IMG/VR virus record: IMGVR_UViG_3300032296_003307
Coordinates: 1 to 64,000 of that record
Reading direction: 5' to 3' (one strand)
Length of the DNA: 64,000 bases
In this document: positions 6,066 through 61,916 of the stretch, piece after piece
How positions within the stretch are numbered: position 1 is the stretch's first letter
Layout of the letters: each line of letters opens with the position of its first letter
The notes under the pieces: model-generated
The model's database searches: none
What the model saw: only the letters and a program-made list of their open reading frames with translations
What the model was told of the DNA's origin: nothing
Translations under genes and position numbers: made by a program

Positions 6066-6424
6066 AAAAATTAATAGATTTACTTAACGAAATCGAAGAA
6101 AAAGACAACAAAAAAGTTGTTAAAGAAGAACCATCTGTAGTAGATGAGGTAGGAAAATTCTTTGTAGTTAAAAAACCTAAAAAAGGTATGACCAAAGAAG
6201 ATATGGTATATGAAGCTACTGTATTCGATGAAGTAAAAATGGAAGAGGTAAAAGGTGTTTACAAAAACAAATCAGAAGCCAATCGCCACGCCACTGCATC
6301 TTTAATGGAATATGAAAAACAACTTCAGGAAATGGAAGCCGCTGTAGAAGAGTTCCGTGCCATGAAGAAAGATATTGAAGCAAAAAGAAAAGAAGCAGCC
6401 GAAAAAGTTAAAAGTCTTAAATGA
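6062..6424 (+). CDS. Hypothetical protein with leader peptide and C-terminal coiled coil
   Basis: MKKLIDLLNE leader; ATGA overlaps with both neighbours. Confidence 0.7.
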   Translation: MKKLIDLLNEIEEKDNKKVVKEEPSVVDEVGKFFVVKKPKKGMTKEDMVYEATVFDEVKMEEVKGVYKNKSEANRHATASLMEYEKQLQEMEAAVEEFRAMKKDIEAKRKEAAEKVKSLK

Positions 6425-9400
6425 TAGATTCTATCCTAGAGATATTATTTGAGGAAGACTACACAAAAACAGTAGCCATTTATGGTGGTGGTTTTAAACC
6501 ACCTACCAAAGGTCATTTTAATGTTGTTGAAAAAACATTACAAGAATTACCTGATATAGATGAAGCAATTGTTTTTGTTGGTGGAGGAGTTAGAGATGGT
6601 ATTACCCAAGAAGAATCCTTAACCATTTGGAATATCTACAAAAAATATCTTTCAGATAAAGTTACTATAGAACCATCTGTAGCTCCTGTTAAATCAATTT
6701 TAAATTACGCTAAAGAACATCCTGAAGAAAAAGTTTATTGGATTTTAGGTGCTCGTGAAGGTAATGAAGAAGATTTGACAGATATTGCCAACAGAACTAA
6801 ATCAATTGAAAAATATCCTAACATTGAGGTTAAAGTGATTACCTCCTCAGGTGGTGTTAGTGGTACTAAAACAAGAAAAACCTTATTAGACAATAATAAA
6901 GAACAATTTTTCCATCTCATTCCAGATATAGAGGAAAAAGAGGAAATATGGAACATACTTTCTCCAAAGGTTCAAGAATCATTAGAGGAAGGTTTTATAG
7001 AAAATGCACAAGAAAATATGAAAAAGTTGCTTTTAGCCATTAAACAAGAAGGCAGAGAAACAAGAGATGCCTTTAAGTTAGTTTTAAAAGCAGCCAAAGG
7101 TGAAATCCAACTGACAGACGAACAAAAGAAACAAATTGGAGATCAACTAAAAGATGTTTTGAAAATGGTTGGTTTAGTTAGTATTGCTGTTCTTCCTGGT
7201 AGTTTTATTGTTGGAGCTTTAATTAAAATTTTTAAAGCAGAACGTTTAGTATTTCCTTCATCATTGATGAATGAAGACAAACCCTCAGGTGATTCTAATC
7301 CTTTAGGATTAAAATATATTGATATTTGGCATGAGGGTCAATACAAAGCTGAAGAAAATAAAACAGAAGAAGCTATAAAATTAATGATTCAAGCTGCTAA
7401 AGAAGCTGAAGAATTAGAAAGTATTGGAGAAGCAAATTATTATAAAGGAACTATAGCTTGGTTAAAAAAAGATTATAATACTGTTAACAAATACATTAAT
7501 GATAAATTTGTTAAATCAACAGGTAATGATGAAGTATTAAAACGACTTTTAAATAATAAAGATAAATCTTATAAAGAGGCATATAATACTTCTATAAATG
7601 AAGTTGGAGAAGCAAGTGCTAAAGTTTATCCTTTTTCTTCTGATAAAGATCCTAGTGAAATAATAAATTTAGCTAAAAACTTTTTTAGTAAAGGAACCTC
7701 ATCTAAAGTTTATCAACGAGTTTTAACATATACTTTTTCTACAGATAAAGCCGATTACGTTGTTAAATTTAACATAGAGGTAGAACGTCAAACATATGTA
7801 AACTTCTCTAAAAACCCTGATTGGAAACCAGGTCCTCCATATAAAACATATGCTTCTGTTGGTTTCAATATTGAGGGAGAGGAAGAAGATAAAGATACTA
7901 ATTTAAATGAACAGTTTTCTGTTTTATCTACAGTAACAAAAATTATTTTTGATTTTATTGACAAAATAAATGAAGCTGAAGGTAATTTAGTGTCATTAGT
8001 AATTGCTCCTAAAAGTGATACTGGTGAAGAATCATCATTGAATTCTAAACGAGGTAGATTCTACACAGCATACATTCAAAAGAATTTATCCAAATACCCA
8101 GAATATAAAACCAGAGATGGTAAAAATAATTCAGGGGGTGAATATGTAGAAATTTATAAAACAAACAGTGTAAATGAATTAGAAGAAGGTAGAAAAAAGA
8201 AACCTGATCCTAAAAAAGGAACAGGCAAAAAACCTGAAGGATCAGGTCGTAGATTATACACAGATGAAGATCCTAAAGATACTGTTAGTATTAAATTTAA
8301 AACCAAAGAAGATATAGTTGATACTTTAAATAAAAAACAATTTAAAGCTAAATCACATGCTCGTCAATCTCAAATTATTAATTTAATTCATCAACGAGTA
8401 AGAGCCGCTTATGGTAAAGCAAAAGATCCTGAGGTAAAAGCAAGATTAAAACGTGCTTTAGATTATATTGAGTCTCGTAAAGAGGCATCAAAAGAAAAAA
8501 CAGAACGTTTACGTAAAATGAAAGAAGCATCCGACCCACAAGCAGGAACAGCTTTACCTTATGGTTCAGGATTTGCTCCTGTAAAAGAAAGTTACCAATT
8601 TAAAGTTTCCGATAAAAACTATGATGAAGAAGATAATTCTTTAATTTCAGTTGATTATAAATTTTCTACCCCAGATAATGATTATAGAGTTGAATTTTAT
8701 TCAGGTGAATACAATCCTGAAGCTAAAATATTTGATGTTTCTTTTGGAATAGACAAATATGGTTCTAAAATTGATACTTTCCAAATGACAGGTGAAGGTA
8801 ATGCTTTAAGTATTCTTAAAACTATTGTTGATATTATTAAAGATTTTACAAAACGTTTTGAAGTAAATAAGTTAGTTATTGATCCAACAAGCGAAAAACG
8901 TGGAAAAATTTATTCAATGATATTAAAATCATTACCCCCAGACATCTTAAATAAAGTAGAACTTATAAATGAAAATGATTTATTTGGTTTAAATAAATTG
9001 GATAAAGATTTTGTAAAAGAATCCAAAGAATTAAACGTTCAAGATTTAGCTTATAAACAAATACCAGGACTATTAGAAAAAGGAATTAATTATGGATTAG
9101 CCCATTTTAGAGGATTCATGAAATCTTCTTACAAATGGAGTGGTCCAAAGGATAGAAATGATTTTTTTGATTTTATAGAAAATATAAAAGGAGAAATAAA
9201 ACGAGTTCCTTTATCATCTATAAAACCTTCTCAATCAGGTAATGATTACAAAAATTCCTCTTCAGAATATGAAGCAGAAGAATTTCAAAAAATATTAGAT
9301 GGAGAAAAAAATATAGAGGATCATAGGAAAGAAGATTTTTATCCTATATTAGTTAATAAAAGAGATAATAAAATATTAGATGGAAATCATAGACATTATG

Positions 9401-10434
9401 CTTTATCAGCAATAAATTCACCCTATGCTGTAGTATTATATGTAGATGTTCCTAAACAATATATAAATGAAAAATCAGATCCTTTTGGTTTAAATAAATT
9501 TGCAAAAGACTTTGTAAAAGAAGTTTTTGAAGAAACTTGGAATCCCAAAGACTCGTTCGTATCTTTATCCGTATTTATGAAAGACAATGGAATGAACATA
9601 ACCCCATTGCCTAAAATTAAGGTTATATCAGACGACAAAGAAAATGCGTCGCATCTTTTGGGTAAGACTGCTTACTACAATCCAGCAGATAAGTCAATTA
9701 CTCTTTATACCTTTGGAAGGCACCCAAAAGATGTTTTACGCTCTTTTGCTCATGAAATGGTTCACCACGAACAAAATCTTAATGGTACTTTAGGAAATGT
9801 TAGTACTACTAACACAAATGAAGATGGTCATTTAGATAAACTTGAGAGAGAAGCATATGAAAAAGGTAATATCATGTTTAGAAATTGGGAAGATAGTATT
9901 AAGAGTTCAGTAAATGAAATATATTTTTTAGATATTCCTAAATTCAATTATCCTAAAACATTTGTGGATAAATTACGTAAATCCTTAAATGAAATTACTT
10001 TATCAAAAGATAATGCTGTGGAAATAAATGGAGATTTAACTAATGGAAAATTTCAAGTAGGAGATATAATATATGTGTATTCTATAAAAAATATACCAAA
10101 TCCATATAAAGATGAAGGGGAATTTTATAATGTTTCTTTTTATCCTGAAGATAATATAATTTCTGAACCTTTAGAAGGAAAAGAAAATTATGTTAAAATT
10201 TTATCAACAATGTTCAAAATAATATCTGATTTTTCCGAAAAAGAAAAACCAAAATATATAGGAATATCATCTATGGATAACGACAACAATAAAAATTACC
10301 ATAGAGTATATGCCAATTTAACAGATAATAAATTTAACAGAATACCAGGATACTTTAGAAAAGATGTTAGTCTAGGATTTGATACTCCTCAAGGAAAAGG
10401 TAGATTTGTAGTATTAAAAAGAAAAGATGTATAA
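6421..10434 (+). CDS. 1337-aa modular polyprotein: HxGH-type nucleotidyltransferase, several unknown modules, ParB/Srx-like domain, HExxH metallopeptidase
   Basis: GGFKPPTKGHF (6421-6990), ILDGNHR (ParB module 9022-9471), AHEMVHHEQ...EREAY (9535-9918). Modules are separated by LEE/LMNE/SINE/SVNE/MKE/VKE/LINE/YINE/SLNE. Confidence 0.8.
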   Translation: MIDSILEILFEEDYTKTVAIYGGGFKPPTKGHFNVVEKTLQELPDIDEAIVFVGGGVRDGITQEESLTIWNIYKKYLSDKVTIEPSVAPVKSILNYAKEHPEEKVYWILGAREGNEEDLTDIANRTKSIEKYPNIEVKVITSSGGVSGTKTRKTLLDNNKEQFFHLIPDIEEKEEIWNILSPKVQESLEEGFIENAQENMKKLLLAIKQEGRETRDAFKLVLKAAKGEIQLTDEQKKQIGDQLKDVLKMVGLVSIAVLPGSFIVGALIKIFKAERLVFPSSLMNEDKPSGDSNPLGLKYIDIWHEGQYKAEENKTEEAIKLMIQAAKEAEELESIGEANYYKGTIAWLKKDYNTVNKYINDKFVKSTGNDEVLKRLLNNKDKSYKEAYNTSINEVGEASAKVYPFSSDKDPSEIINLAKNFFSKGTSSKVYQRVLTYTFSTDKADYVVKFNIEVERQTYVNFSKNPDWKPGPPYKTYASVGFNIEGEEEDKDTNLNEQFSVLSTVTKIIFDFIDKINEAEGNLVSLVIAPKSDTGEESSLNSKRGRFYTAYIQKNLSKYPEYKTRDGKNNSGGEYVEIYKTNSVNELEEGRKKKPDPKKGTGKKPEGSGRRLYTDEDPKDTVSIKFKTKEDIVDTLNKKQFKAKSHARQSQIINLIHQRVRAAYGKAKDPEVKARLKRALDYIESRKEASKEKTERLRKMKEASDPQAGTALPYGSGFAPVKESYQFKVSDKNYDEEDNSLISVDYKFSTPDNDYRVEFYSGEYNPEAKIFDVSFGIDKYGSKIDTFQMTGEGNALSILKTIVDIIKDFTKRFEVNKLVIDPTSEKRGKIYSMILKSLPPDILNKVELINENDLFGLNKLDKDFVKESKELNVQDLAYKQIPGLLEKGINYGLAHFRGFMKSSYKWSGPKDRNDFFDFIENIKGEIKRVPLSSIKPSQSGNDYKNSSSEYEAEEFQKILDGEKNIEDHRKEDFYPILVNKRDNKILDGNHRHYALSAINSPYAVVLYVDVPKQYINEKSDPFGLNKFAKDFVKEVFEETWNPKDSFVSLSVFMKDNGMNITPLPKIKVISDDKENASHLLGKTAYYNPADKSITLYTFGRHPKDVLRSFAHEMVHHEQNLNGTLGNVSTTNTNEDGHLDKLEREAYEKGNIMFRNWEDSIKSSVNEIYFLDIPKFNYPKTFVDKLRKSLNEITLSKDNAVEINGDLTNGKFQVGDIIYVYSIKNIPNPYKDEGEFYNVSFYPEDNIISEPLEGKENYVKILSTMFKIISDFSEKEKPKYIGISSMDNDNNKNYHRVYANLTDNKFNRIPGYFRKDVSLGFDTPQGKGRFVVLKRKDV

Positions 10435-43596: not shown

Positions 43597-46371
43597 ATGA
43601 GCAGTACCATAATAATAAAAAATAGTGCAACTTCGGGAAGTGTTCCACCATCTTTGGTACAAGGTGAATTTGGTATTAATGTTTACGATGGTAAATTATA
43701 TTACGGAAGTGGTTCAGGAAATGTTGTAAAAGAATTTAATTCTTCCTCTTATGCAAGTTTTGCTGTAAGTGCCTCTTATGCTGCAACCTCTTCCTATGCA
43801 AACAATTTTAATGTAGCAGGAACTTTAACAGCTTTAAGTGCCTCTATAACTTATTTAGTAAATGTTTTTGAAACATCATCAACAATTTATTCTTCCGGTT
43901 CAAACCAATTTGGTGATGATGCAAGTGATTTACAAACCTTATACGGTACAGTAGATATAAAAACAGGTCCTGTTTTAATATCAGGCTCTTTAATTACAAC
44001 TGGTTCAAATACTTTAATAGGAAACACTTTCTTAACAGGTAGCTTAAATGTAACAGGTTCCACTACTCAAGTAGGAAACAATACTTTATTAGGAAACACT
44101 TCTTTATCAGGTAGTATTATAATATCAGGATCACTTGGAACAAATAATCCAACAGTTAAAATATACGGTGATACAACACATGATGGATATATCCGTTTTG
44201 ACCCAGTATCAACAAATATTGATAATACAATATCTGCCTCTTATATTTATGTTTCTGGCTCTACAAACGATTTATACTTTTCTCAAAATGGTAATGGATA
44301 TAATAATACAACTCGTTTAAGATGGTTAGAAGGTAATTTATATACAGGTTTATTAAATGGAGGTGTAATTACAACCCAATCAGCTACTGTTTATCAAATA
44401 TCAAGTGGTAGTGGTATTATTGTTGATTTAAATGCAAGTTTAAGTGATAACCCATACCCAACAATACAATATTTAAATTGGGGAAATTTATCAGCAAGTA
44501 TTGCTGCTTTTACAGCATCTTATCAACAAGCCTTTGTTGGTATTGATTCAACAAATAATATTTTTGCACAAGGAGAACCGTTTACAAATGGTCAATTTGA
44601 TAGTATAATCAATATTGGTAATGTATTATTTCAAAATGGATCTACAATTAACGGTGTTAAAACACAGCCTTCAGTAGCATACGGCTTTGAACAACAACAA
44701 AACATATTTAATAGAGCATTTGGACCTTTAAAACTTTCAGGCTATACTTTAGCACCAAGTGCTTCCTCAACAGGCAGTCTTATAGTTGGAAGTGGTACCG
44801 CTTATGCTCCTGGTTCCAATTATATAAATGACCCAAATGAATCCTTCTATACCGTTGATAGTGGAACTAATATATCTAAAATATTTAGATACTATCAATC
44901 AGGATCTACTTGGGTTTATTTAACAAATGCTGGTGCTGGATATCCAACAATAGATCCAACTCAATATTCTAACAACGGTACTTTAACTGGAGTAGGTGCT
45001 GGTAATTGGTCTATACAAAGGTGTTTTTGGTATCCTAATTCAGTAACAAAAGCAATTGTTGTTTATTATGGTAATGCTATTTATCCAACAGAGGCAGAAG
45101 CTTTAGCAAATATTAGTTTTGAATCATTTACTGAAGCACCAAACACAGCAGCCAATGCCATTTATCTTGGTGCCATTATTATAAATCAAAATGGTGTATT
45201 TACAAATACTAATACTTTTACAATTTATCCTAGTGGTTTATTTAGACAAGTAGGAGGATCTGGTGGGGGAGGTTCAATAATAACAACCACTTTATCAGGT
45301 TTATCTGATGTAAATATTTCTGGACCAACCGATGGTCAGGCTTTAGTTTATAATGCTACTGCTTTAAAGTGGGAAAACGAATCCTATTTTTCAGGCTCTA
45401 TTTCAGGAAATGCTGCAACAGCAACAAGTGCCTCTTATGCAACAACAGCCTCTTATGTTTTAAATGCTGTAAGTGCCTCATTTGCTACTACTGCTTCTTT
45501 TTCCACAACTTCTCTAACAGCTTCTTTAGCTTTAAGAGCATCAGGATCATTAACAGGTAGTTTATTAGGAACAGCCTCTTATGCCTCTCAGGCCTTAAGT
45601 TCATCTTTTGCAACAACAGCCTCTTATGTTGCAAATGCCTCATCTTTCCCTTTTACAGGTTCAGCCATCATAACAGGAAGTCTAAGTGTTATAGGACCTT
45701 CCACAGTAACTGGTTCTTTTACAGTAATAACTGGCTCCTCTATTGAATTACAAGTTACAAACACAGGAGTAAAAATAGGAAATGCCTCAACCGATACTCA
45801 TACAGTAACAGGTTCTCTACAGGTTGCAGGACAAACCCGTATTTCAGGTTCCTTCAACACAGCAATTTCAGGAACCATTTTAACAGTAGTAGGATCAGGC
45901 TCTACACAACCAATCTTTACTGTTCAAGGTTCTCAAGGTGAATTATTCTCAGTAACAGATTCACTTTCAGGATCTTTATTCAGTGTAAACGATATTTCAG
46001 GTTTACCAATCTTGGAAGTATTTTCAAATAGTACCACAAACATGGGTAACTATTTGGCTCCAGCCCTTTACACAACAAACAAAATAACACAAACCAATTC
46101 AGGTTCGTTTGTTGTTTATAGTTTACCAACAGCCTCTTACGATGGAGCATTTTATGATTACACAGTAAGATCAGGCTCTAATGCAAGAGCAGGTCAAATT
46201 ATGGCAATTTGGAGTGGCTCTTCTGTAAACTTTACAGAAACAACTACAACATCTTTTGGAGATACTTCAGCAATAAACTTTATAGTTATAGTAACAGGTT
46301 CAAATATGGCTTTAACAGGTTCTTCAGCAACAGGTTCTTGGACAATTAAAACAATAATAAGGAGTATATAA
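43597..46371 (+). CDS. Long tail fibre protein
   Basis: N-terminal LVQGEFGINVYDGKLYYG fibre-anchor motif; TASYA and ITGS repeats. Confidence 0.75.
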   Translation: MSSTIIIKNSATSGSVPPSLVQGEFGINVYDGKLYYGSGSGNVVKEFNSSSYASFAVSASYAATSSYANNFNVAGTLTALSASITYLVNVFETSSTIYSSGSNQFGDDASDLQTLYGTVDIKTGPVLISGSLITTGSNTLIGNTFLTGSLNVTGSTTQVGNNTLLGNTSLSGSIIISGSLGTNNPTVKIYGDTTHDGYIRFDPVSTNIDNTISASYIYVSGSTNDLYFSQNGNGYNNTTRLRWLEGNLYTGLLNGGVITTQSATVYQISSGSGIIVDLNASLSDNPYPTIQYLNWGNLSASIAAFTASYQQAFVGIDSTNNIFAQGEPFTNGQFDSIINIGNVLFQNGSTINGVKTQPSVAYGFEQQQNIFNRAFGPLKLSGYTLAPSASSTGSLIVGSGTAYAPGSNYINDPNESFYTVDSGTNISKIFRYYQSGSTWVYLTNAGAGYPTIDPTQYSNNGTLTGVGAGNWSIQRCFWYPNSVTKAIVVYYGNAIYPTEAEALANISFESFTEAPNTAANAIYLGAIIINQNGVFTNTNTFTIYPSGLFRQVGGSGGGGSIITTTLSGLSDVNISGPTDGQALVYNATALKWENESYFSGSISGNAATATSASYATTASYVLNAVSASFATTASFSTTSLTASLALRASGSLTGSLLGTASYASQALSSSFATTASYVANASSFPFTGSAIITGSLSVIGPSTVTGSFTVITGSSIELQVTNTGVKIGNASTDTHTVTGSLQVAGQTRISGSFNTAISGTILTVVGSGSTQPIFTVQGSQGELFSVTDSLSGSLFSVNDISGLPILEVFSNSTTNMGNYLAPALYTTNKITQTNSGSFVVYSLPTASYDGAFYDYTVRSGSNARAGQIMAIWSGSSVNFTETTTTSFGDTSAINFIVIVTGSNMALTGSSATGSWTIKTIIRSI

Positions 46372-50429: not shown

Positions 50430-52178
50430 ATGGCAGAAACATTAATATCACCTGGCGTACTAGCATTAGAAAACGACCAGTCATTTGTATCCCAACAACC
50501 TGTTACCGTTGGTGCCGCTATCATTGGTCCTACAGTTAAAGGCCCTGTAGAAGTTCCTACAATTGTTACCTCTTACAGTGATTATCAGAATAAATTTGGT
50601 ACTACTTTCTTAAGTAGCAGCCAAGTTTATACTTATTTCACTTCTATCGCCGCTTACAATTATTTTGCAAACGGTGGTCAAACATTATTGGTAGCAAGAG
50701 TAGTAAGTGGTTCATTCACTTCAGCTACTACAGCAACCGCTTCTGTAACTGGTCCTTCTGGTGGTGGAGTATCTATTCTTAACTTTAATACTTCTCAATC
50801 TTTAGTATTAAACACTATTTCTCAAGGAACTGTTATGAATAGTTCAAGCTCCTTAGATTCAGCAGGTGCTTTGGCTTCAGGTTCATCTGATAACATTAGA
50901 TGGCAAATTGCTAACGCTGATACATCATCAGGTACTTTCTCATTACTAATTAGACAAGGTGATGATACTACTCTTACTCCTACAGTATTAGAAACATGGA
51001 CTAACTTATCAATGGATCCTACAGCTCCTAACTATGTAGCAAGAGTAATTGGTGACCAATATAGACAATACAATGTAGCCGATAACCAAATTGAAGTTTT
51101 AGGTACTTATCCTAATGCTTCAAGATATGTTTATGTATCTAGTGTTCCAACAGCAACTCCTTTCTATTTTGATAACAACGGTATAGCTAAATCTAGCTTT
51201 ACTGGTTCTATTCCTAGAAATGCAAGTGGTTCTTTTACAGGTGCTACTGGTAATTTATTTGGAAACAATGCTAAATTCTATAGTAATATAGTTTCTGGTG
51301 TAACAAATATTCAAGGTGTTTTAAGTTCAAGCTATGATAACATGATTGCTTTATTAGCAAACCAAGATGATTATGTATTCAATGTATTAATGACTCCTGG
51401 TTTGTTTGCTTCTGAAGCCCCACTTGGTTCTTCTCAAGTAACTTCAATCATTTCAAACACTGAAAACAGAGGTGATAATATCTATGTAAGTGATTTAGTA
51501 CCTTTTAGCTCAAGCATTACATCAGTAACTAGTCAAGCAAATTCTAAAAACACTTCATACGCTGCTACTTACTGGCCTTGGGTTCAAGTAATTGATCCTG
51601 ATTCTGCTCAATTAGTATGGGTACCTGCCTCAACAATGATTGGTGGTGTGTATGCATTTAACGATTCAGTTTCAGAACCTTGGTTTGCTCCTGCTGGTAT
51701 TAACAGAGGTGGATTAAGCACAGTAGTAAGAGCTGAAAAGAAATTATCTCAAGCTAACCGCGATACTTTATACCAAAATAAAGTTAACCCAATTGCAACA
51801 TTCCCTGGAAACGGAGTTGTAGTATATGGTCAGAAAACATTACAAACTAAAGCATCTGCACTTGATCGTGTGAATGTAAGAAGATTGTTAATTGCTCTTA
51901 AATCTTATATCTCTCAAGTTGCTCAAAACTTGGTGTTTGAACAAAACACAATAGCTACTCGTACTAGCTTCTTAAACCAAGTTAATCCATATTTGGAATC
52001 AGTTCAACAGAGACAAGGTTTATATGCCTTCAGAGTAGTAATGGATGATTCAAATAATACTCCTGATGTAATTGATAGAAATCAGTTAGTTGGTGCTATT
52101 TACTTACAACCAACCAAAACAGCTGAATTCATTTACTTAAACTTCAATATTTTACCAACTGGAGTTTCTTTTGAATAA
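50430..52178 (+). CDS. gp18: Tail sheath protein (T4 gp18-like)
   Basis: SPGV, GPTVKGP, YWPWV, PWFAPAGINRG, LYQNKVNPI, DRVNVRRLL, FEQN. Confidence 0.97.
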   Translation: MAETLISPGVLALENDQSFVSQQPVTVGAAIIGPTVKGPVEVPTIVTSYSDYQNKFGTTFLSSSQVYTYFTSIAAYNYFANGGQTLLVARVVSGSFTSATTATASVTGPSGGGVSILNFNTSQSLVLNTISQGTVMNSSSSLDSAGALASGSSDNIRWQIANADTSSGTFSLLIRQGDDTTLTPTVLETWTNLSMDPTAPNYVARVIGDQYRQYNVADNQIEVLGTYPNASRYVYVSSVPTATPFYFDNNGIAKSSFTGSIPRNASGSFTGATGNLFGNNAKFYSNIVSGVTNIQGVLSSSYDNMIALLANQDDYVFNVLMTPGLFASEAPLGSSQVTSIISNTENRGDNIYVSDLVPFSSSITSVTSQANSKNTSYAATYWPWVQVIDPDSAQLVWVPASTMIGGVYAFNDSVSEPWFAPAGINRGGLSTVVRAEKKLSQANRDTLYQNKVNPIATFPGNGVVVYGQKTLQTKASALDRVNVRRLLIALKSYISQVAQNLVFEQNTIATRTSFLNQVNPYLESVQQRQGLYAFRVVMDDSNNTPDVIDRNQLVGAIYLQPTKTAEFIYLNFNILPTGVSFE

Positions 52179-52225: not shown

Positions 52226-52714
52226 ATGGCAGTATTAAATCCAAACGAAATATTTTTCACAGCCTTTGAACCAAAACAGGCAAACCGTTTCATCATGTAT
52301 ATAGACGGTATACCAGCGTATGAAATCAAAGGTGTTGGTGCAGTCACATTAACCCAAGGTACTGTTCCTTTAAACCATATAAACGTACAACGCTTTGTTA
52401 AAGGTAAAACAACATGGGGTACTATCCAATTCACATTGTTTGACCCTATCACTCCTTCAGGTGCTCAAGCAGTAATGGAATGGGTACGTTTACATCACGA
52501 ATCAGTAACTGGTAGAGATGGTTACTCAGACTTCTACAAGAAAGATTTAACTTTTGATGTATTAGGTCCTGTGGGTGATATCGTATCAGAATGGATTATC
52601 AAAGGTGCTTTAATTACAGAAGCCAACTTTGGTGATTACAACTGGGATACTGTTGATACTGCTGTAAACATTACTATGACCGTTCAACCAGATTACTGTG
52701 TATTGAACTTCTAA
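52226..52714 (+). CDS. gp19: Tail tube protein (gp19-like)
   Basis: Follows sheath; NRFIMYI, TWGTIQFTLFD, EWIIKGA, FGDYNW. Confidence 0.9.
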   Translation: MAVLNPNEIFFTAFEPKQANRFIMYIDGIPAYEIKGVGAVTLTQGTVPLNHINVQRFVKGKTTWGTIQFTLFDPITPSGAQAVMEWVRLHHESVTGRDGYSDFYKKDLTFDVLGPVGDIVSEWIIKGALITEANFGDYNWDTVDTAVNITMTVQPDYCVLNF

Positions 52715-52736: not shown

Positions 52737-52767
52737 GAGCTCGCATTTTTTGCGAGCTTCTTTTTTT
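52737..52767 (+). terminator. Intrinsic terminator after the tail tube gene
   Basis: AGCTCGCA-ttttt-TGCGAGCT followed by TCTTTTTTT. Confidence 0.85.
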
Positions 52768-52794: not shown

Positions 52795-53535
52795 ATGAGC
52801 GAATTTAAGTTTCCAACAGAAGTTGTGGAGTTGCCTTCAAAAGGTTTATTATATCCTGAAGGCTCACCTTTAGCAGAAGGTAAAATTGAAATGAAATACA
52901 TGACTGCTAAAGAAGAAGACATTTTAACTAACCAAAATTACATTAGACAAGGTATTGTAATTGACAAATTGCTTCAATCCATGATTGTAAGTGAAATCGA
53001 TTATAATGATCTTTTAGTGGCAGATAAAGATGCTATTATGGTTGCAGCCCGTATTTTAGGTTATGGTAAAGATTATTCTTTTAATTACGGAGGTAAAGAA
53101 GTAACAGTTGATTTAACCTTAATGAAAGAAAAATTATTAGATGAATCTTTAATCAAAAACAAACGAACCAATGAATTCCATTTCACATTACCCCACTCAG
53201 GAAATGAAATTTCTTTCAAATTATTTACTCATGGTGATGAAAAGAAAATAGAAAAAGAATTAGAAGGTTTAAAAAAGATTGACCCTAAAGGAAGTTTTGA
53301 ATTATCTACAAGATTAAAACACATGGTTTTATCCGTTAATGGAAACAGAGATACCAAATCAATCAGGGAATTTGTAGATAATGTATTTCTAGCCAGAGAT
53401 TCAAAAGCATTTAGAGATTATGTATCCAAAATATCTCCAGGAATTGATTTAAAATTTGATTTTGAAGATGATGGTTACGTTGAGGAGGGCGTAAATCTTC
53501 CTATTACTGTTAACTTTTTTTGGCCTGACGCCTGA
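52795..53535 (+). CDS. Tail assembly chaperone / baseplate hub assembly protein
   Basis: ELPSKG..Y, KYMTAKEEDIL, L...DKDAIMVAARILGYG; lies between tube and tape measure. Confidence 0.8.
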   Translation: MSEFKFPTEVVELPSKGLLYPEGSPLAEGKIEMKYMTAKEEDILTNQNYIRQGIVIDKLLQSMIVSEIDYNDLLVADKDAIMVAARILGYGKDYSFNYGGKEVTVDLTLMKEKLLDESLIKNKRTNEFHFTLPHSGNEISFKLFTHGDEKKIEKELEGLKKIDPKGSFELSTRLKHMVLSVNGNRDTKSIREFVDNVFLARDSKAFRDYVSKISPGIDLKFDFEDDGYVEEGVNLPITVNFFWPDA

Positions 53536-53797
53536 TTATAGATGGACTCTTTTTACTCAAATACATGAAATATGTTTTTGGGGTCAAGGAGGTTATGATT
53601 ATGAAACTGTTTATAACATGCCTATTTGGTTAAGAAAGTATACTTTTAATAAAATTTTAGATTTTCATAAACAAAAGAATAATTCTCAACAAAATGATGT
53701 AGTTGAACAATCTATAAAAAATATGAAATCAGCAGGATCGGTTAATAATAAAAAAATACAAGTTCCTGATTATGTAACGAAGGCATCTAAAAAATGA
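53522..53797 (+). CDS. Frameshift extension of the tail chaperone (G-T/E-E' type), missing from the ORF track
   Basis: Open +1 frame GLTPDYRWTLFTQIHEICFWGQGGYDYETVYNMPIWLRKYTF...KASKK* with no 5' ATG, entered at the T7 run 53515-21. Confidence 0.75.
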   Translation, partial: GLTPDYRWTLFTQIHEICFWGQGGYDYETVYNMPIWLRKYTFNKILDFHKQKNNSQQNDVVEQSIKNMKSAGSVNNKKIQVPDYVTKASKK

Positions 53798-59018: not shown

Positions 59019-61916
59019 ATGGGAAATATTATAGGTGAAGGTTTTGCTCCTGAAATTATTAAACAGATTAATGTAAGACAAACAATATATGGTTCTGTAA
59101 ATAGAGATAATGAACAATTATCATATCTAGAAGCAAGAACAGGATGGTGTACTTTAGTTTCTTCAGTTGATGTTAAATCTGTTTTTAGAAACCTCCCATC
59201 TTATGGAGATTCTTTAGCTACAGAATTTGTTTTATGGGGAGGTGTAACAAATGAAAGAAATCGTTATGGACAATCTAGTTTTCAACGTTTTGGAGTTTGG
59301 GATGGACAAGATTATATTGATGTAGGAGACAACCGTACTTCCCTTGACCAGGCTTATAATTATTATGCTTATGGTGTTGGAGGAACAGAATTTGGTTTAA
59401 AACCAATGCCAGGAATAAAATCAGCCTCTATTAAAACAGAAACAAGAGGATCATTAAAAACAGCAACTATTCAAATCCAAGCCAACAATAGAGCTCAATT
59501 TGATATTATTGATGCTTTATATTTACGTTTAGGATATACTATGTTATTAGAATGGGGACATTCCTCTTATTATGATAATGATGGTAATTACATACAAGAT
59601 AATCCTTATTCTTTTTCAGATATTTTTCTAACAAGAAAAAATGGTAATCAAATTTTATCATTAAGTGAGCTTCAAACAGATATAAATTATATTCGCGAAG
59701 CCTCAGCTGGTAATTATGATGCTGTAATAGGAAAAGTAGTAAATTTTAATTGGACTTACACTAAAGAAGGTACTTATGATATAACATTAACTTTAAGAAG
59801 TGTAGGAGATGTTATTGAATCTCTAAAAGCAAATTTACTTCTACCGGGTGGATCTTTAAATACCCCAGAAGACAAAGTAACTCCTGAAGATCCTGAAAAC
59901 CCAACATCAAACGATCTTATTGAAGCTTTTGCTAATACAAATGAAATAACAAAATTCTTTTTTACAATCCAACAAACTTTAAAAAATGAACCAGTAGCCA
60001 CAAACGGAATGGCTGTTGCAAAAACAGATGATATAGTAGATGCTGTTAAACAAAATTATAATGGTCATGGGTATGAATATTATATAAGATTTGGTTATTT
60101 TTTAGATTTTCTAGCAACCAAAATTATTCCCTATATAGACAATAATACAGCAGACAGATTAATTTATATAGATACTGATGTTGAATCTAATATTATCTAT
60201 ATGGTAAATAGACAAATAAGCGCTGATCCTAGAATATGCTTATTTAATACAGGATTTAGAGGTACACAAGGTTCAACTTTGTCTTTTCTTCCGGATGCTG
60301 AACCTTTTGAAATAGAAAAAAATGGTAACACTTATGGAAAAATAATGAATGCTTATTTTAACATGACGTGGATTATTACTAGTATGGAAGAACTAAAAGA
60401 TGATAAAGGAAAAGTTAGTTTATATGATTTAATAGATGCTTTATGTAAAGGATGGAATCAGTCAACAGGTAACTATAATTCACTAGAACCAATAATAGAT
60501 TCTGAAACTAATACTATTAAAATTATAGACGAAAGTCCTTTACCTGATAAAGATACTTTTTTAACAGAAAATAAATTACCAACCCAACTAGCTTCTTTTG
60601 ATGTTTATGGTTATTATTTAGGTAATGGTAAAGATGGTTATGAGAATAACCAATATCATGCTGGTTTTATTAAAGATTTAAGTTTTAACACTACTGTTCC
60701 TCCTAACTTAGCAACAATGATTACTGTTGGAGCAACATCTCAAGGTTATATTGTAGGACAAGATGCTACTGCTTTATCCCAAATGAATGCTGGATTAATA
60801 GATAGATGGAAACCAACAATAAATCAACCAGCTCCTTCAGGATCAGCTTCTACTTCTTCTTTACAACAAGATTATGCTGGTCCATTGGAAGCCTTTAATA
60901 AATATCTTGCTAATATATCCTCAGTTAATGGGGGGTTACCGGGATGGGATGAAGAAATTATTGATACTTTTGTTTCCAATCAGACTCAATTTCTTGAATA
61001 TGATCAAGCAAAACAAACTCAAGCACGAACAGGTTCAGCTTCCCCATCAAACGGATTTTTACCTTTTGATTTATCCTTAACTATGGATGGACTTTCAGGA
61101 ATGAAAATATATCAACAGTTTACCATTGATTCTGATTTTTTACCTTTAAATTATCCTAGATCCTTAAACTTTTTAATAAAAGGTATAACTCATGATATTA
61201 CCTCAAACCAATGGAATACAACCATAGAATCTATAGCTGTATCTAAAAATCCTAGTGGTACTGTAAAAAGTAGAAATATACAAATAAGTTCTACAACAGC
61301 TAATATTCCTGTTGCTACTCCTCCTAATTTCTCTGCTGTTGATACTGCAACGGATTTAAGAACAGCAATAGTAGAAACAGCTTTAGCATATGCTAGAGTT
61401 CAACCTGGTTTATATCCAATTGGAGGAGGTCGATTTAATGAAGCTTCATTTACAAGTGATATGCAGTCTGTAGGATATTCTGGTCAAGCTTGGTGTAATT
61501 TATTTACTAAATTAGTGTGGAAAAAAGCATATGAAGCTGTTGGAAAAAATAATGCCAACATAAAAAATATAGCATCTTCCCAATTTGGTAACTTTAGTGT
61601 AGTTTCAGGACCTATAACTTCTTATGTTCCTACTACTTTCGCTAATATGTTTGCAAAAGGAAAAGCAGCAAACTGGCAAGGAAAAAATGGTTTAATTAAA
61701 TTAGTACCTGGAGATATGGTAATATATGATGTAATAGGAACAACAGGACACCAAGAAAGAGATCACATAGGAATAGTAGTAGCTGTAAATTATACTAATG
61801 GAACCTTTACTTCAGTAGATGGAAATTTCTCAAATAAAGTAACCCAATATACTCAACCTATGGATGGAGTAGCTAATGGACAAAGATTATATGCTGTTGT
61901 TAAACCTATAGAATAA
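59019..61916 (+). CDS. Baseplate hub protein fused to C-terminal CHAP amidase (tail-associated lysin)
   Basis: N-terminal hub (LRLGYTMLLEWG, VVNFNW); C-terminal AWCNLF...PGDMVIYD...HIGIVV...VDGN. Confidence 0.8.
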   Translation: MGNIIGEGFAPEIIKQINVRQTIYGSVNRDNEQLSYLEARTGWCTLVSSVDVKSVFRNLPSYGDSLATEFVLWGGVTNERNRYGQSSFQRFGVWDGQDYIDVGDNRTSLDQAYNYYAYGVGGTEFGLKPMPGIKSASIKTETRGSLKTATIQIQANNRAQFDIIDALYLRLGYTMLLEWGHSSYYDNDGNYIQDNPYSFSDIFLTRKNGNQILSLSELQTDINYIREASAGNYDAVIGKVVNFNWTYTKEGTYDITLTLRSVGDVIESLKANLLLPGGSLNTPEDKVTPEDPENPTSNDLIEAFANTNEITKFFFTIQQTLKNEPVATNGMAVAKTDDIVDAVKQNYNGHGYEYYIRFGYFLDFLATKIIPYIDNNTADRLIYIDTDVESNIIYMVNRQISADPRICLFNTGFRGTQGSTLSFLPDAEPFEIEKNGNTYGKIMNAYFNMTWIITSMEELKDDKGKVSLYDLIDALCKGWNQSTGNYNSLEPIIDSETNTIKIIDESPLPDKDTFLTENKLPTQLASFDVYGYYLGNGKDGYENNQYHAGFIKDLSFNTTVPPNLATMITVGATSQGYIVGQDATALSQMNAGLIDRWKPTINQPAPSGSASTSSLQQDYAGPLEAFNKYLANISSVNGGLPGWDEEIIDTFVSNQTQFLEYDQAKQTQARTGSASPSNGFLPFDLSLTMDGLSGMKIYQQFTIDSDFLPLNYPRSLNFLIKGITHDITSNQWNTTIESIAVSKNPSGTVKSRNIQISSTTANIPVATPPNFSAVDTATDLRTAIVETALAYARVQPGLYPIGGGRFNEASFTSDMQSVGYSGQAWCNLFTKLVWKKAYEAVGKNNANIKNIASSQFGNFSVVSGPITSYVPTTFANMFAKGKAANWQGKNGLIKLVPGDMVIYDVIGTTGHQERDHIGIVVAVNYTNGTFTSVDGNFSNKVTQYTQPMDGVANGQRLYAVVKPIE

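Follow-up and report, generated by a model that had tools for sequence, protein, structure and literature searches.

Comparative evidence for programmed +1 frameshifting in a gp26/gp51-family gene between the tail tube and tape measure genes of a lake-metagenome myovirus

Results

Locus and reading frames

The window analysed in this study, a stretch of 64,000 nucleotides (nt), belongs to IMG/VR virus record IMGVR_UViG_3300032296_003307, which is 268,739 bp long, is rated complete by CheckV and derives from a lake-metagenome myovirus whose tail module is closest to that of Flavobacterium phage immuto. Our subject is a gene of the T4 gp26/gp51 family located between the tail tube and tape measure genes, whose open reading frame (ORF) overlaps a second frame at a run of seven T residues and which is probably decoded into a short and a long product by a +1 ribosomal frameshift (Table 1). 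The original prediction, made from this DNA, had assigned the locus to a 'T4-like' phage, a term that fits loosely; T4 has relatives of the gene, but as two unshifted genes.

Table 1. Coordinates of the two-frame locus and of the neighbouring tail genes in the window (aa, amino acids)
Feature	Position	Strand	Remarks
Zero-frame ORF, short product, 246 aa	52795..53535	+	Ends ...VNFFWPDA-stop; T4 gp26/gp51 family member
Candidate slip site UUU_UUU_U (T7 run)	53515..53521	+	Conserved in relatives
14-nt core TTT TTT TGG CCT GA	53515..53528	+	Double-read: F-F-W-P-D/E and F-F-G-L-T
+1-frame extension, 91 codons plus TGA	53522..53797	+	Homologue in +1 frame in 82/82 loci
Predicted long product (P0002), 333 aa	52795..53797	+	Translated with one base skipped; junction ...PITVNFF/GLTPDYR...
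First ATG of +1 frame, conserved internal Met (in YNMPIWLR)	53618..53620	+	32 conserved codons into extension
Tape measure protein gene, 865 aa	53830..56427	+	E 1e-36 to immuto tape measure protein
Tail tube protein gene	52226..52714	+	phrog_4542 'tail tube protein', E 6.7e-23
Tail sheath protein gene	50430..52178	+	Pfam Phage_sheath_1 and Phage_sheath_1C; phrog_23, E 1.5e-75

The zero-frame 3' end reads GTT AAC TTT TTT TGG CCT GAC GCC TGA, with the stop codon at 53533-53535. The +1 frame contains no stop from 53495 to the TGA at 53795-53797, and its earliest ATG, GTG or TTG is the ATG at 53618; the -1 frame meets a TGA at 53526-53528. These readings confirm the coordinates of the original prediction, according to which the chaperone ended N-F-F-W-P-D-A-stop across the T7 run at 53515-21, the +1 frame stayed open from 53495 to TGA 53797 (91 codons after the run) with no ATG near its start, and the -1 frame stopped immediately. 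The locus had also been placed directly before the tape measure gene, and the 865-aa ORF found there indeed matches the annotated tape measure protein of immuto (29% identity over 532 aa, E 1e-36). The interval between the tube and tape measure genes holds both overlapping frames, as in G/GT-type pairs.

The open +1 frame is not a product of chance. The window has a G+C content of 32% and a median stop-to-stop stretch of 6 codons on the + strand, and in a comparison covering stop-to-stop stretches of 95-139 codons, 53495-53797 was the sole one with its first start deep inside (codon 41), a stretch cut by the 5' edge excepted. Nor is the T7 run an assembly error: it is covered without insertion or deletion by contigs from four lake metagenome runs of different studies, three of these runs lying outside the study that is the probable source of the window, and DNA nearly identical to the window is present in many lake metagenomes. 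Runs of T7 or longer occur 3 times on the + strand in 64 kb, the other two being at 52761-52767, in the intergenic leader just 5' of the chaperone ORF start, and at 9162-9168, inside a 1337-aa ORF (6421-10434). At window positions 53510-53530 the summed contig depth goes up ~8- to 90-fold in four lake metagenomes, the slip-site sequence being nearly exact in many other phages of the same lakes.

Conservation of the two frames and of the switch point

Using tblastn against 50,697 phage records, we found both the ORF and the overlapping +1 extension in immuto and in Microcystis phage Mel-JY01, and the uncultured huge phage LR756508 has the same +1 arrangement. At least 588 relatives were present in IMG/VR, 80 of which were retrieved (60-77% identity); in these, in immuto and in Mel-JY01, the extension lies in the +1 frame without exception (82/82 loci). 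Third-position variability follows the zero frame 5' of the run and the +1 frame 3' of it, with the change at the run itself. Per-position entropy in the 14-base core TTT-YTT-TGG-CCT-GA is 0-0.54 bits over 65 unique loci, as opposed to 1.0-2.0 bits, for the most part 1.5-2.0, at wobble positions nearby. All 65 unique relatives have TTT as the first slip codon; the second is TTT in 57, CTT in 6, CTA in 2 and TTC in none of them. At other Phe columns conserved in these genes, TTC appears in 4-13/65. Because a +1-frame stop lies merely 26 nt before the zero-frame stop in many loci, the shift is confined there to 8 codons. Comparison among relatives thus shows that the locus is arranged in two frames, where exactly the frames switch, that UUU_Y is conserved and that an independent start is absent; the U-rich site and the +1 frame, whose conservation the original prediction had left to be checked, are kept.

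Among the best 120 relatives of the fused translation, 117 are short forms of ~246 aa and three are in-frame fusions (P0016, P0024, P0080) whose junction reads ...DFFGLTPEYR..., as predicted for the long product. The DNA of two of these fusions carries T6 rather than T7. The T6 contigs (P0016 and P0024; L087:880-930 and L088:1080-1110), which are rare in metagenomes and hold the long form as one ORF, may be genuine variants that make the long form alone, or homopolymer errors. Eight isolate phages, whose genomes come from different sequencing groups, also have the split arrangement.

The extension domain

In the extension, a conserved core of 45 residues (GLTxEYRxxLFxQIHEIVFHGxGGYDWxTVYNMPIWLRxFTF) is joined by a variable linker to a tail that is likewise conserved (PxYxTKAxKK). 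Ten residues are invariant in its first 41 positions, six of them ahead of the first start codon (alignment A2). The basic motif P-x-Y-x-T-K-A-x-K-K, found at 53752-53794 of the window after the variable low-complexity linker, ends the extension and could be a docking peptide. As judged from the alignment, Met 53618 is a conserved internal residue and no start codon. An internal Met is the first possible start in ~20/71 unique loci, the window included, and locus L078 has no start codon at all in the extension frame. The extension profile matches 895 clusters at 50% identity; nearly all of the top 150 are ORFs of 37-134 aa, which are gene-caller fragments begun at accidental codons.

In a structural model of the fusion P0016, the extension region forms three helices. 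A complex prediction of the extension with the tube protein scored 0.00, which is evidence neither for nor against binding. Within 53586-53633, a perfect Shine-Dalgarno-like AAGGAGG lies 7-8 nt 5' of a third-frame ATG at 53601 that opens merely a 10-codon ORF; it encodes the invariant G-x-G-G of the extension and is probably a by-product of Gly codons.

Site variants and shift direction in distant lineages

In the window clade and LR756508, the site variants TTT CTT TGG, TTT CTT TAC, TTT CTA TGG and TTT CTA TTC occur. More distant phages carry TTT TTT A (Listeria phage LIS04), TTT TTT C (Bacillus phage SP-15), TTC TTT CGT (Bacillus phage HSE3 and Streptococcus phage GXN1) and TCC TTT TTT TGG (Rhodothermus phage RM378), and each +1 site variant precedes a +1-frame extension of ~70-90 codons. 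In two jumbo phages, it is the -1 frame that carries the extension, again at the Phe-Phe motif: LR756511, at GG-T TTT TTC (heptamer T_TTT_TTC; extension L097:2197-2426), and Xanthomonas phage XacN1, at GC-T TTT TTT (heptamer T_TTT_TTT; extension L098:2735-2986).

A hidden Markov model (HMM) of the extensions of four Firmicute phages, run against 1,071 ORFs, matched the -1 ORF of LR756511 (E 1.4e-6), the +1 ORF of LR756508 (E 6.2e-6), Mel-JY01 (E 0.004) and XacN1 (E 0.017). The window-clade extension HMM matched LR756508 (E 8.8e-14) and HSE3 (E 0.007) and did not significantly detect the extensions of LIS04, GXN1, XacN1, LR756511 and RM378. The homology link among extensions runs via LR756508, Mel-JY01 and the Firmicute-phage HMM, and the RM378 extension is equivalent in position only. 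These profile matches indicate that the extension is one homologous domain reached by different shifts per lineage, a sign of selected recoding rather than of error or decay.

Protein family and fold

The 246-aa ORF matched Pfam PF12322 (T4_baseplate) with E 5.9e-6 and 26.6 bits (cut-off 24.5), over residues 26-122 only, as well as phrog_150 'baseplate hub', and was 60% identical to the immuto 'baseplate hub subunit'. PF12322 scores of relatives were 85.6 bits for LIS04, 100.4 for SP-15, 81.0 for HSE3 and 37.6 for RM378. Searches of the ORF against Pfam, PHROG and NCBIfam matched no tail chaperone family. The G/GT-type pair of the original prediction is supported as regards arrangement and position; in its sequence, the protein appears to be no lambda G or P2 E homologue, and it belongs to PF12322.

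The model of natural fusion P0016, which is 57% identical to the window long form, had a predicted local distance difference test (pLDDT) score of 89.8 and a confident alpha/beta N-domain. In BFVD it matched the SP-15 baseplate hub subunit (E 4e-17, template modelling (TM) score 0.82) and many other 'baseplate hub' proteins, and in the ESM Atlas a PF12322 cluster (TM 0.92 over residues 1-250), the shape search there matching the N-domain only. Foldseek of the fused model against PDB and Swiss-Prot AlphaFold returned nothing below E 0.1. When model residues 1-100 were compared with 48,161 PDB chains by VIA-align, the top three were 3fgx, YqbN (3klu) and the HK97 tail assembly chaperone (2ob9), at a Z of only 5.4-6.6, so that the N-terminal fold likeness to tail assembly chaperones is suggestive and not proof.

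Relation to T4 gp26 and gp51

In T4, in which the tape measure protein gp29 is a hub component, genes 26 and 51 (L086:7803-9229) are adjacent and transcribed divergently; gene 25 directly borders gene 26, and genes 27-28-29 come after gene 51. Their products have been reviewed as hub assembly chaperones (PMC3004832). Both are strong PF12322 members (gp26 E 8.8e-64, gp51 E 3.9e-52) and therefore paralogues. The 208-aa gp26 ends in ...KEFFELL, at the same Phe-Phe motif, and the 249-aa gp51 runs in frame for ~48 residues past the PF12322 profile, this tail being PF28602, Gp51_C.

An hhalign comparison of 73 fused with 92 gp51 sequences aligned 157 columns through the frameshift junction (E 9.1e-4, probability 23%), and the tails alone scored 18.4, the highest of 200 column shuffles being 18.3. 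The top five non-self matches in an extension HMM search were all gp51 (best E 0.005). According to ESM Atlas features, 69 of the 100 named clusters nearest the window extension carry Gp51_C (best 0.87), which we treat as a lead only. An hhalign comparison of alignment A1 with single T4 gp51 or gp26 sequences gave no match and was uninformative, as the Pfam-detectable N-domain was missed too. This weak but consistent evidence suggests that the extension resembles the gp51 C-terminal tail. PF12322 is present in two T4 genes and in one gene each of LIS04 and RM378. The complete genome of the window has one copy, with a profile match ending at 53520, as found with profile A1; a six-frame PF12322 search missed even the known gene.

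Neighbouring genes

The gene order sheath, tube, chaperone and tape measure is the same in immuto, SP-15, LIS04 and HSE3, and RM378 and XacN1 have other neighbour genes around the locus. All 58 gene-like ORFs of at least 120 aa in the window are on the + strand and include those for the large terminase, portal, major head, sheath and tube proteins. Several large ORFs, including 6421-10434, 43597-46371 and 59019-61916, had no PHROG family match, and no tRNA genes were found in the window.

Discussion

Proposed mechanism

Our results make it likely that a programmed +1 ribosomal frameshift in a chaperone gene of the gp26/gp51 family yields a short and a long form of the protein. According to this proposal, one PF12322 gene between the tail tube and tape measure genes would be decoded in two ways. 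Most ribosomes would stop at TGA 53533 and produce the 246-aa short form, and a minority would undergo the shift on the U-run at 53515-53521, where peptidyl-tRNA-Phe would move from a UUU codon onto the overlapping UUY triplet (in the window, from UUU to UUU). Shifted ribosomes would then read GGC CUG ACG and onwards to TGA 53797, giving the 333-aa long form with the junction ...VNFF-GLTPDYR...; for a +1 shift or the loss of one U, the tryptic junction peptide is predicted to end ...PITVNFFGLTPDYR. The shift would be ribosomal, +1 and of low efficiency, and both forms would act jointly as non-virion chaperones of tape-measure, hub and tube assembly, with lambda G or T4 gp26 as the counterpart of the short form and lambda GT or T4 gp51 as that of the long form.

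A UUU codon followed by U or C is the single element common to the +1 lineages: UUU_U is present twice in the window, and UUU_Y, which would let tRNA-Phe re-pair one base downstream, was found in every +1 lineage examined. In bacteria, UUU_Ynn has been described as particularly liable to +1 shifting, with no need of a stop codon; the proposed YopN-TyeA site of Yersinia is UUU-UGG, and some RF2 genes contain UUU_U (PMC5009743; PMC3789692). A slip on the first UUU would be compatible with all +1 variants of the window clade, LIS04 and SP-15, and in HSE3 and GXN1 (UUC UUU C) a slip is possible on the second Phe codon alone. With UGG in the A site, a second-codon slip would be compatible with most loci, the CUA variants excluded. 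With a first-UUU slip, the post-shift residue of the long form would be Phe (Tyr in CUA variants) in the window clade and SP-15 and Leu in LIS04, the corresponding short-form residue being Phe or Leu. The first- and second-codon models are inseparable; on the window U7 both give ...VNFFGLTPDYR.... The lambda G:GT ratio of 30:1 (PMC5009743) would agree with a shift that is infrequent and unstimulated.

Alternative explanations

The same fusion could be made if RNA polymerase dropped one U of the U7 run, given that a U6 transcript encodes a product identical to the +1 product, that the run is T7 in 57/65 unique relatives, and that the existence of T6 DNA variants as in-frame fusions shows that run length can change. 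Yet 8/65 unique relatives (TTT CTT T, TTT CTA T), as well as HSE3 and GXN1 (TTC TTT C), have no homopolymer of six or more and are still +1, and the -1 lineages carry classical ribosomal heptamers. Bacterial RNA polymerases usually slip efficiently only on runs of ~8-9 or more, and we consider transcriptional slippage unlikely. The original prediction had entertained both a +1 and a -2 shift at AAC-UUU-UUU-UGG, and a Mu-like -2 shift on U7, adding one extra Phe (...NFFFGLTPDYR...), would indeed permit perfect re-pairing two bases back and reach the same reading frame. The +1 part of that proposal is favoured: tRNA re-pairing at -2 is not available in relatives with UUU CUU U, UUU CUA U or UUC UUU C, and natural fusions and the distant-lineage alignment have two aromatic residues, not three, before G/S-L, which makes a -2 shift improbable. 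Several variants offer neither a homopolymer nor -2 re-pairing, which rules out both routes as the general mechanism.

The remaining alternatives dispense with recoding altogether. If the two frames were independent genes, the downstream ORF would start alone at ATG 53618 or at a non-canonical codon such as CTG 53525, and a small ORF is routinely called here (37-134 aa among the top hits of the 895 clusters, with immuto_232, Rm378p030 and HSE3_gp075 as named cases); Met 53618 is conserved as well. However, such initiation, which the original prediction had raised as the competing account, cannot explain the 32 strongly conserved codons, six invariant residues among them, that precede the first start codon. 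Moreover, +1-frame coding periodicity starts at the run, L078 offers no start codon, the extension always adjoins the Phe-Phe motif, whether in the +1 or the -1 frame, and T4 gp51 appears to have an equivalent tail in frame, all of which renders two independent genes very improbable. Finally, the 3/120 in-frame fusions among the best database relatives would be expected if the true sequence were T6 with a single 333-aa ORF, the split being a sequencing or assembly error or a sign of gene decay. This explanation is scarcely credible, given T7 without indels in contigs from four runs of different studies, the split arrangement in 82/82 loci and eight isolate phage genomes, and ~246-aa short forms in 117/120 best matches.

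Several points nevertheless count against a programmed +1 shift, or at least temper it. The case for it is comparative throughout, and on T7 alone the sequence cannot separate +1, -2 and the loss of one U in transcription. Double coding can account for the near-invariant TGG CCT GA, which is thus not independent evidence of a signal. We found no conserved stimulatory RNA structure, the RNAalifold consensus being empty, and no Rfam match at the locus. The window has a hairpin at 53533-53601 (-20.2 kcal/mol, z -1.97) that begins 12 nt after the run, and it is not conserved in relatives. As for chaperone function, it is inferred from synteny, published T4 genetics and weak fold matches.

Implications and novelty

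With regard to T4, the simplest interpretation is that a single frameshifted gene here fulfils the tasks of genes 26 and 51, and the chances seem about equal that it does or does not. We hypothesize, with no more inclination to accept than to reject it, that an ancestral PF12322 gene was read in two frames at the Phe-Phe motif and U-run, with a +1 shift in the majority of lineages and -1 in certain jumbo phages, and was duplicated in T4, the short form giving gene 26 and the long form gene 51 (PF12322 plus Gp51_C). If this were true, the tail-chaperone frameshift would have been replaced by gene duplication in the T4 lineage rather than being missing, gp26 and gp51 would correspond to G and GT in serving gp29, the tape measure, and +1 recoding events would form a very large class not annotated to date, with 895 extension clusters at 50% identity.

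Tail-chaperone pairs made by frameshifting are textbook knowledge for long-tailed phages, and T4 has been quoted as the exception (PMC5009743). No joined coding sequence is annotated in the records of immuto, Mel-JY01, LIS04, SP-15, HSE3, RM378, GXN1 and XacN1, and we found no earlier publication tying PF12322, gp26 or gp51 to a frameshift pair in a partial coverage of the literature, which is no proof of novelty. Frameshifted chaperone pairs before the tape measure gene, a probable +1 shift in HSTV-2 and +1 shifts in PSA are already known. What appears to be new, on the sequence comparisons made here, is that another chaperone family has a recoding class which is very large, deeply conserved and predominantly +1.

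In large myoviruses, the gp26/gp51 family would accordingly have a deeply conserved site for recoding of its own, in most cases of the +1 type at UUU_Y, a site type with few well-supported natural uses in bacteria. In annotation, gene callers turn the extension into hundreds of spurious small-ORF clusters. The proposal also offers a concrete hypothesis, open to testing, on what T4 gp26 and gp51 do, which has long been unclear, and bears on the 'T4 exception'. Since the same protein junction is reached via +1, -1 or in-frame fusion (T4), the family may serve as a natural system for recoding-site evolution, for which SP-15 (Bacillus subtilis), LIS04 (Listeria innocua), immuto (Flavobacterium) and T4 are cultivable test beds.

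Comparison with known recoding systems

Tail assembly chaperone frameshift pairs were reportedly treated by Xu, Hendrix and Duda in 2004. The lambda G/GT, P2 E/E+E' and Mu gp41/42 pairs (reviewed in PMC5009743) resemble the locus described here in having two overlapping frames between the major tail or tube gene and the tape measure gene, a slippery site at the 3' end of the first frame, a second frame without its own start, and a shift direction that differs among relatives. The N-terminal ~100 residues, with weak Z scores, best match tail assembly chaperone folds in the PDB, a possible further likeness to lambda G/GT. In contrast to the -1 shift at X_XXY_YYZ that is commonest among such pairs, the shift here would be +1 at UUU_Y, though LR756511 and XacN1 do use -1 heptamers; the upstream protein, at 246 aa, is about twice the size of G and belongs to PF12322, with no Pfam tail-chaperone match. 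T4 gp26 and gp51 share the N-domain family, gp26 ends at Phe-Phe, and the gp51 tail aligns with the +1 extension. However, T4 has two separate genes without a frameshift where the window genome has one copy, and the tail similarity is weak.

Precedents for +1 frameshifting in structural or assembly genes of tailed phages are provided by HSTV-2 and Listeria phage PSA. The tail chaperone of the haloarchaeal myovirus HSTV-2 has been described as 'very likely +1' (PMC5009743) and differs in being archaeal, whereas the PSA shifts affect capsid and tail genes, and no chaperone, at CCC_UGA and at CCC with a pseudoknot. UUU_Y +1 sites are known from E. coli argI, synthetic UUU-pyrimidine constructs, YopN-TyeA, a minority of RF2 genes and influenza PA-X, with UCC_UUU_CGU (PMC5009743; PMC3789692). 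The UUU_UGG of the window is identical to the site proposed for YopN-TyeA, which failed a mutational test in Y. pseudotuberculosis (PMC5009743; PMC3789692), and the UUC_UUU_CGU of HSE3 and GXN1 is close to the PA-X cassette. Unlike in RF2, no stop codon or upstream Shine-Dalgarno-like stimulator is seen at the window site. What sets the present site apart from these UUU_Y systems is its conservation across hundreds of phage lineages, in a structural-assembly gene.

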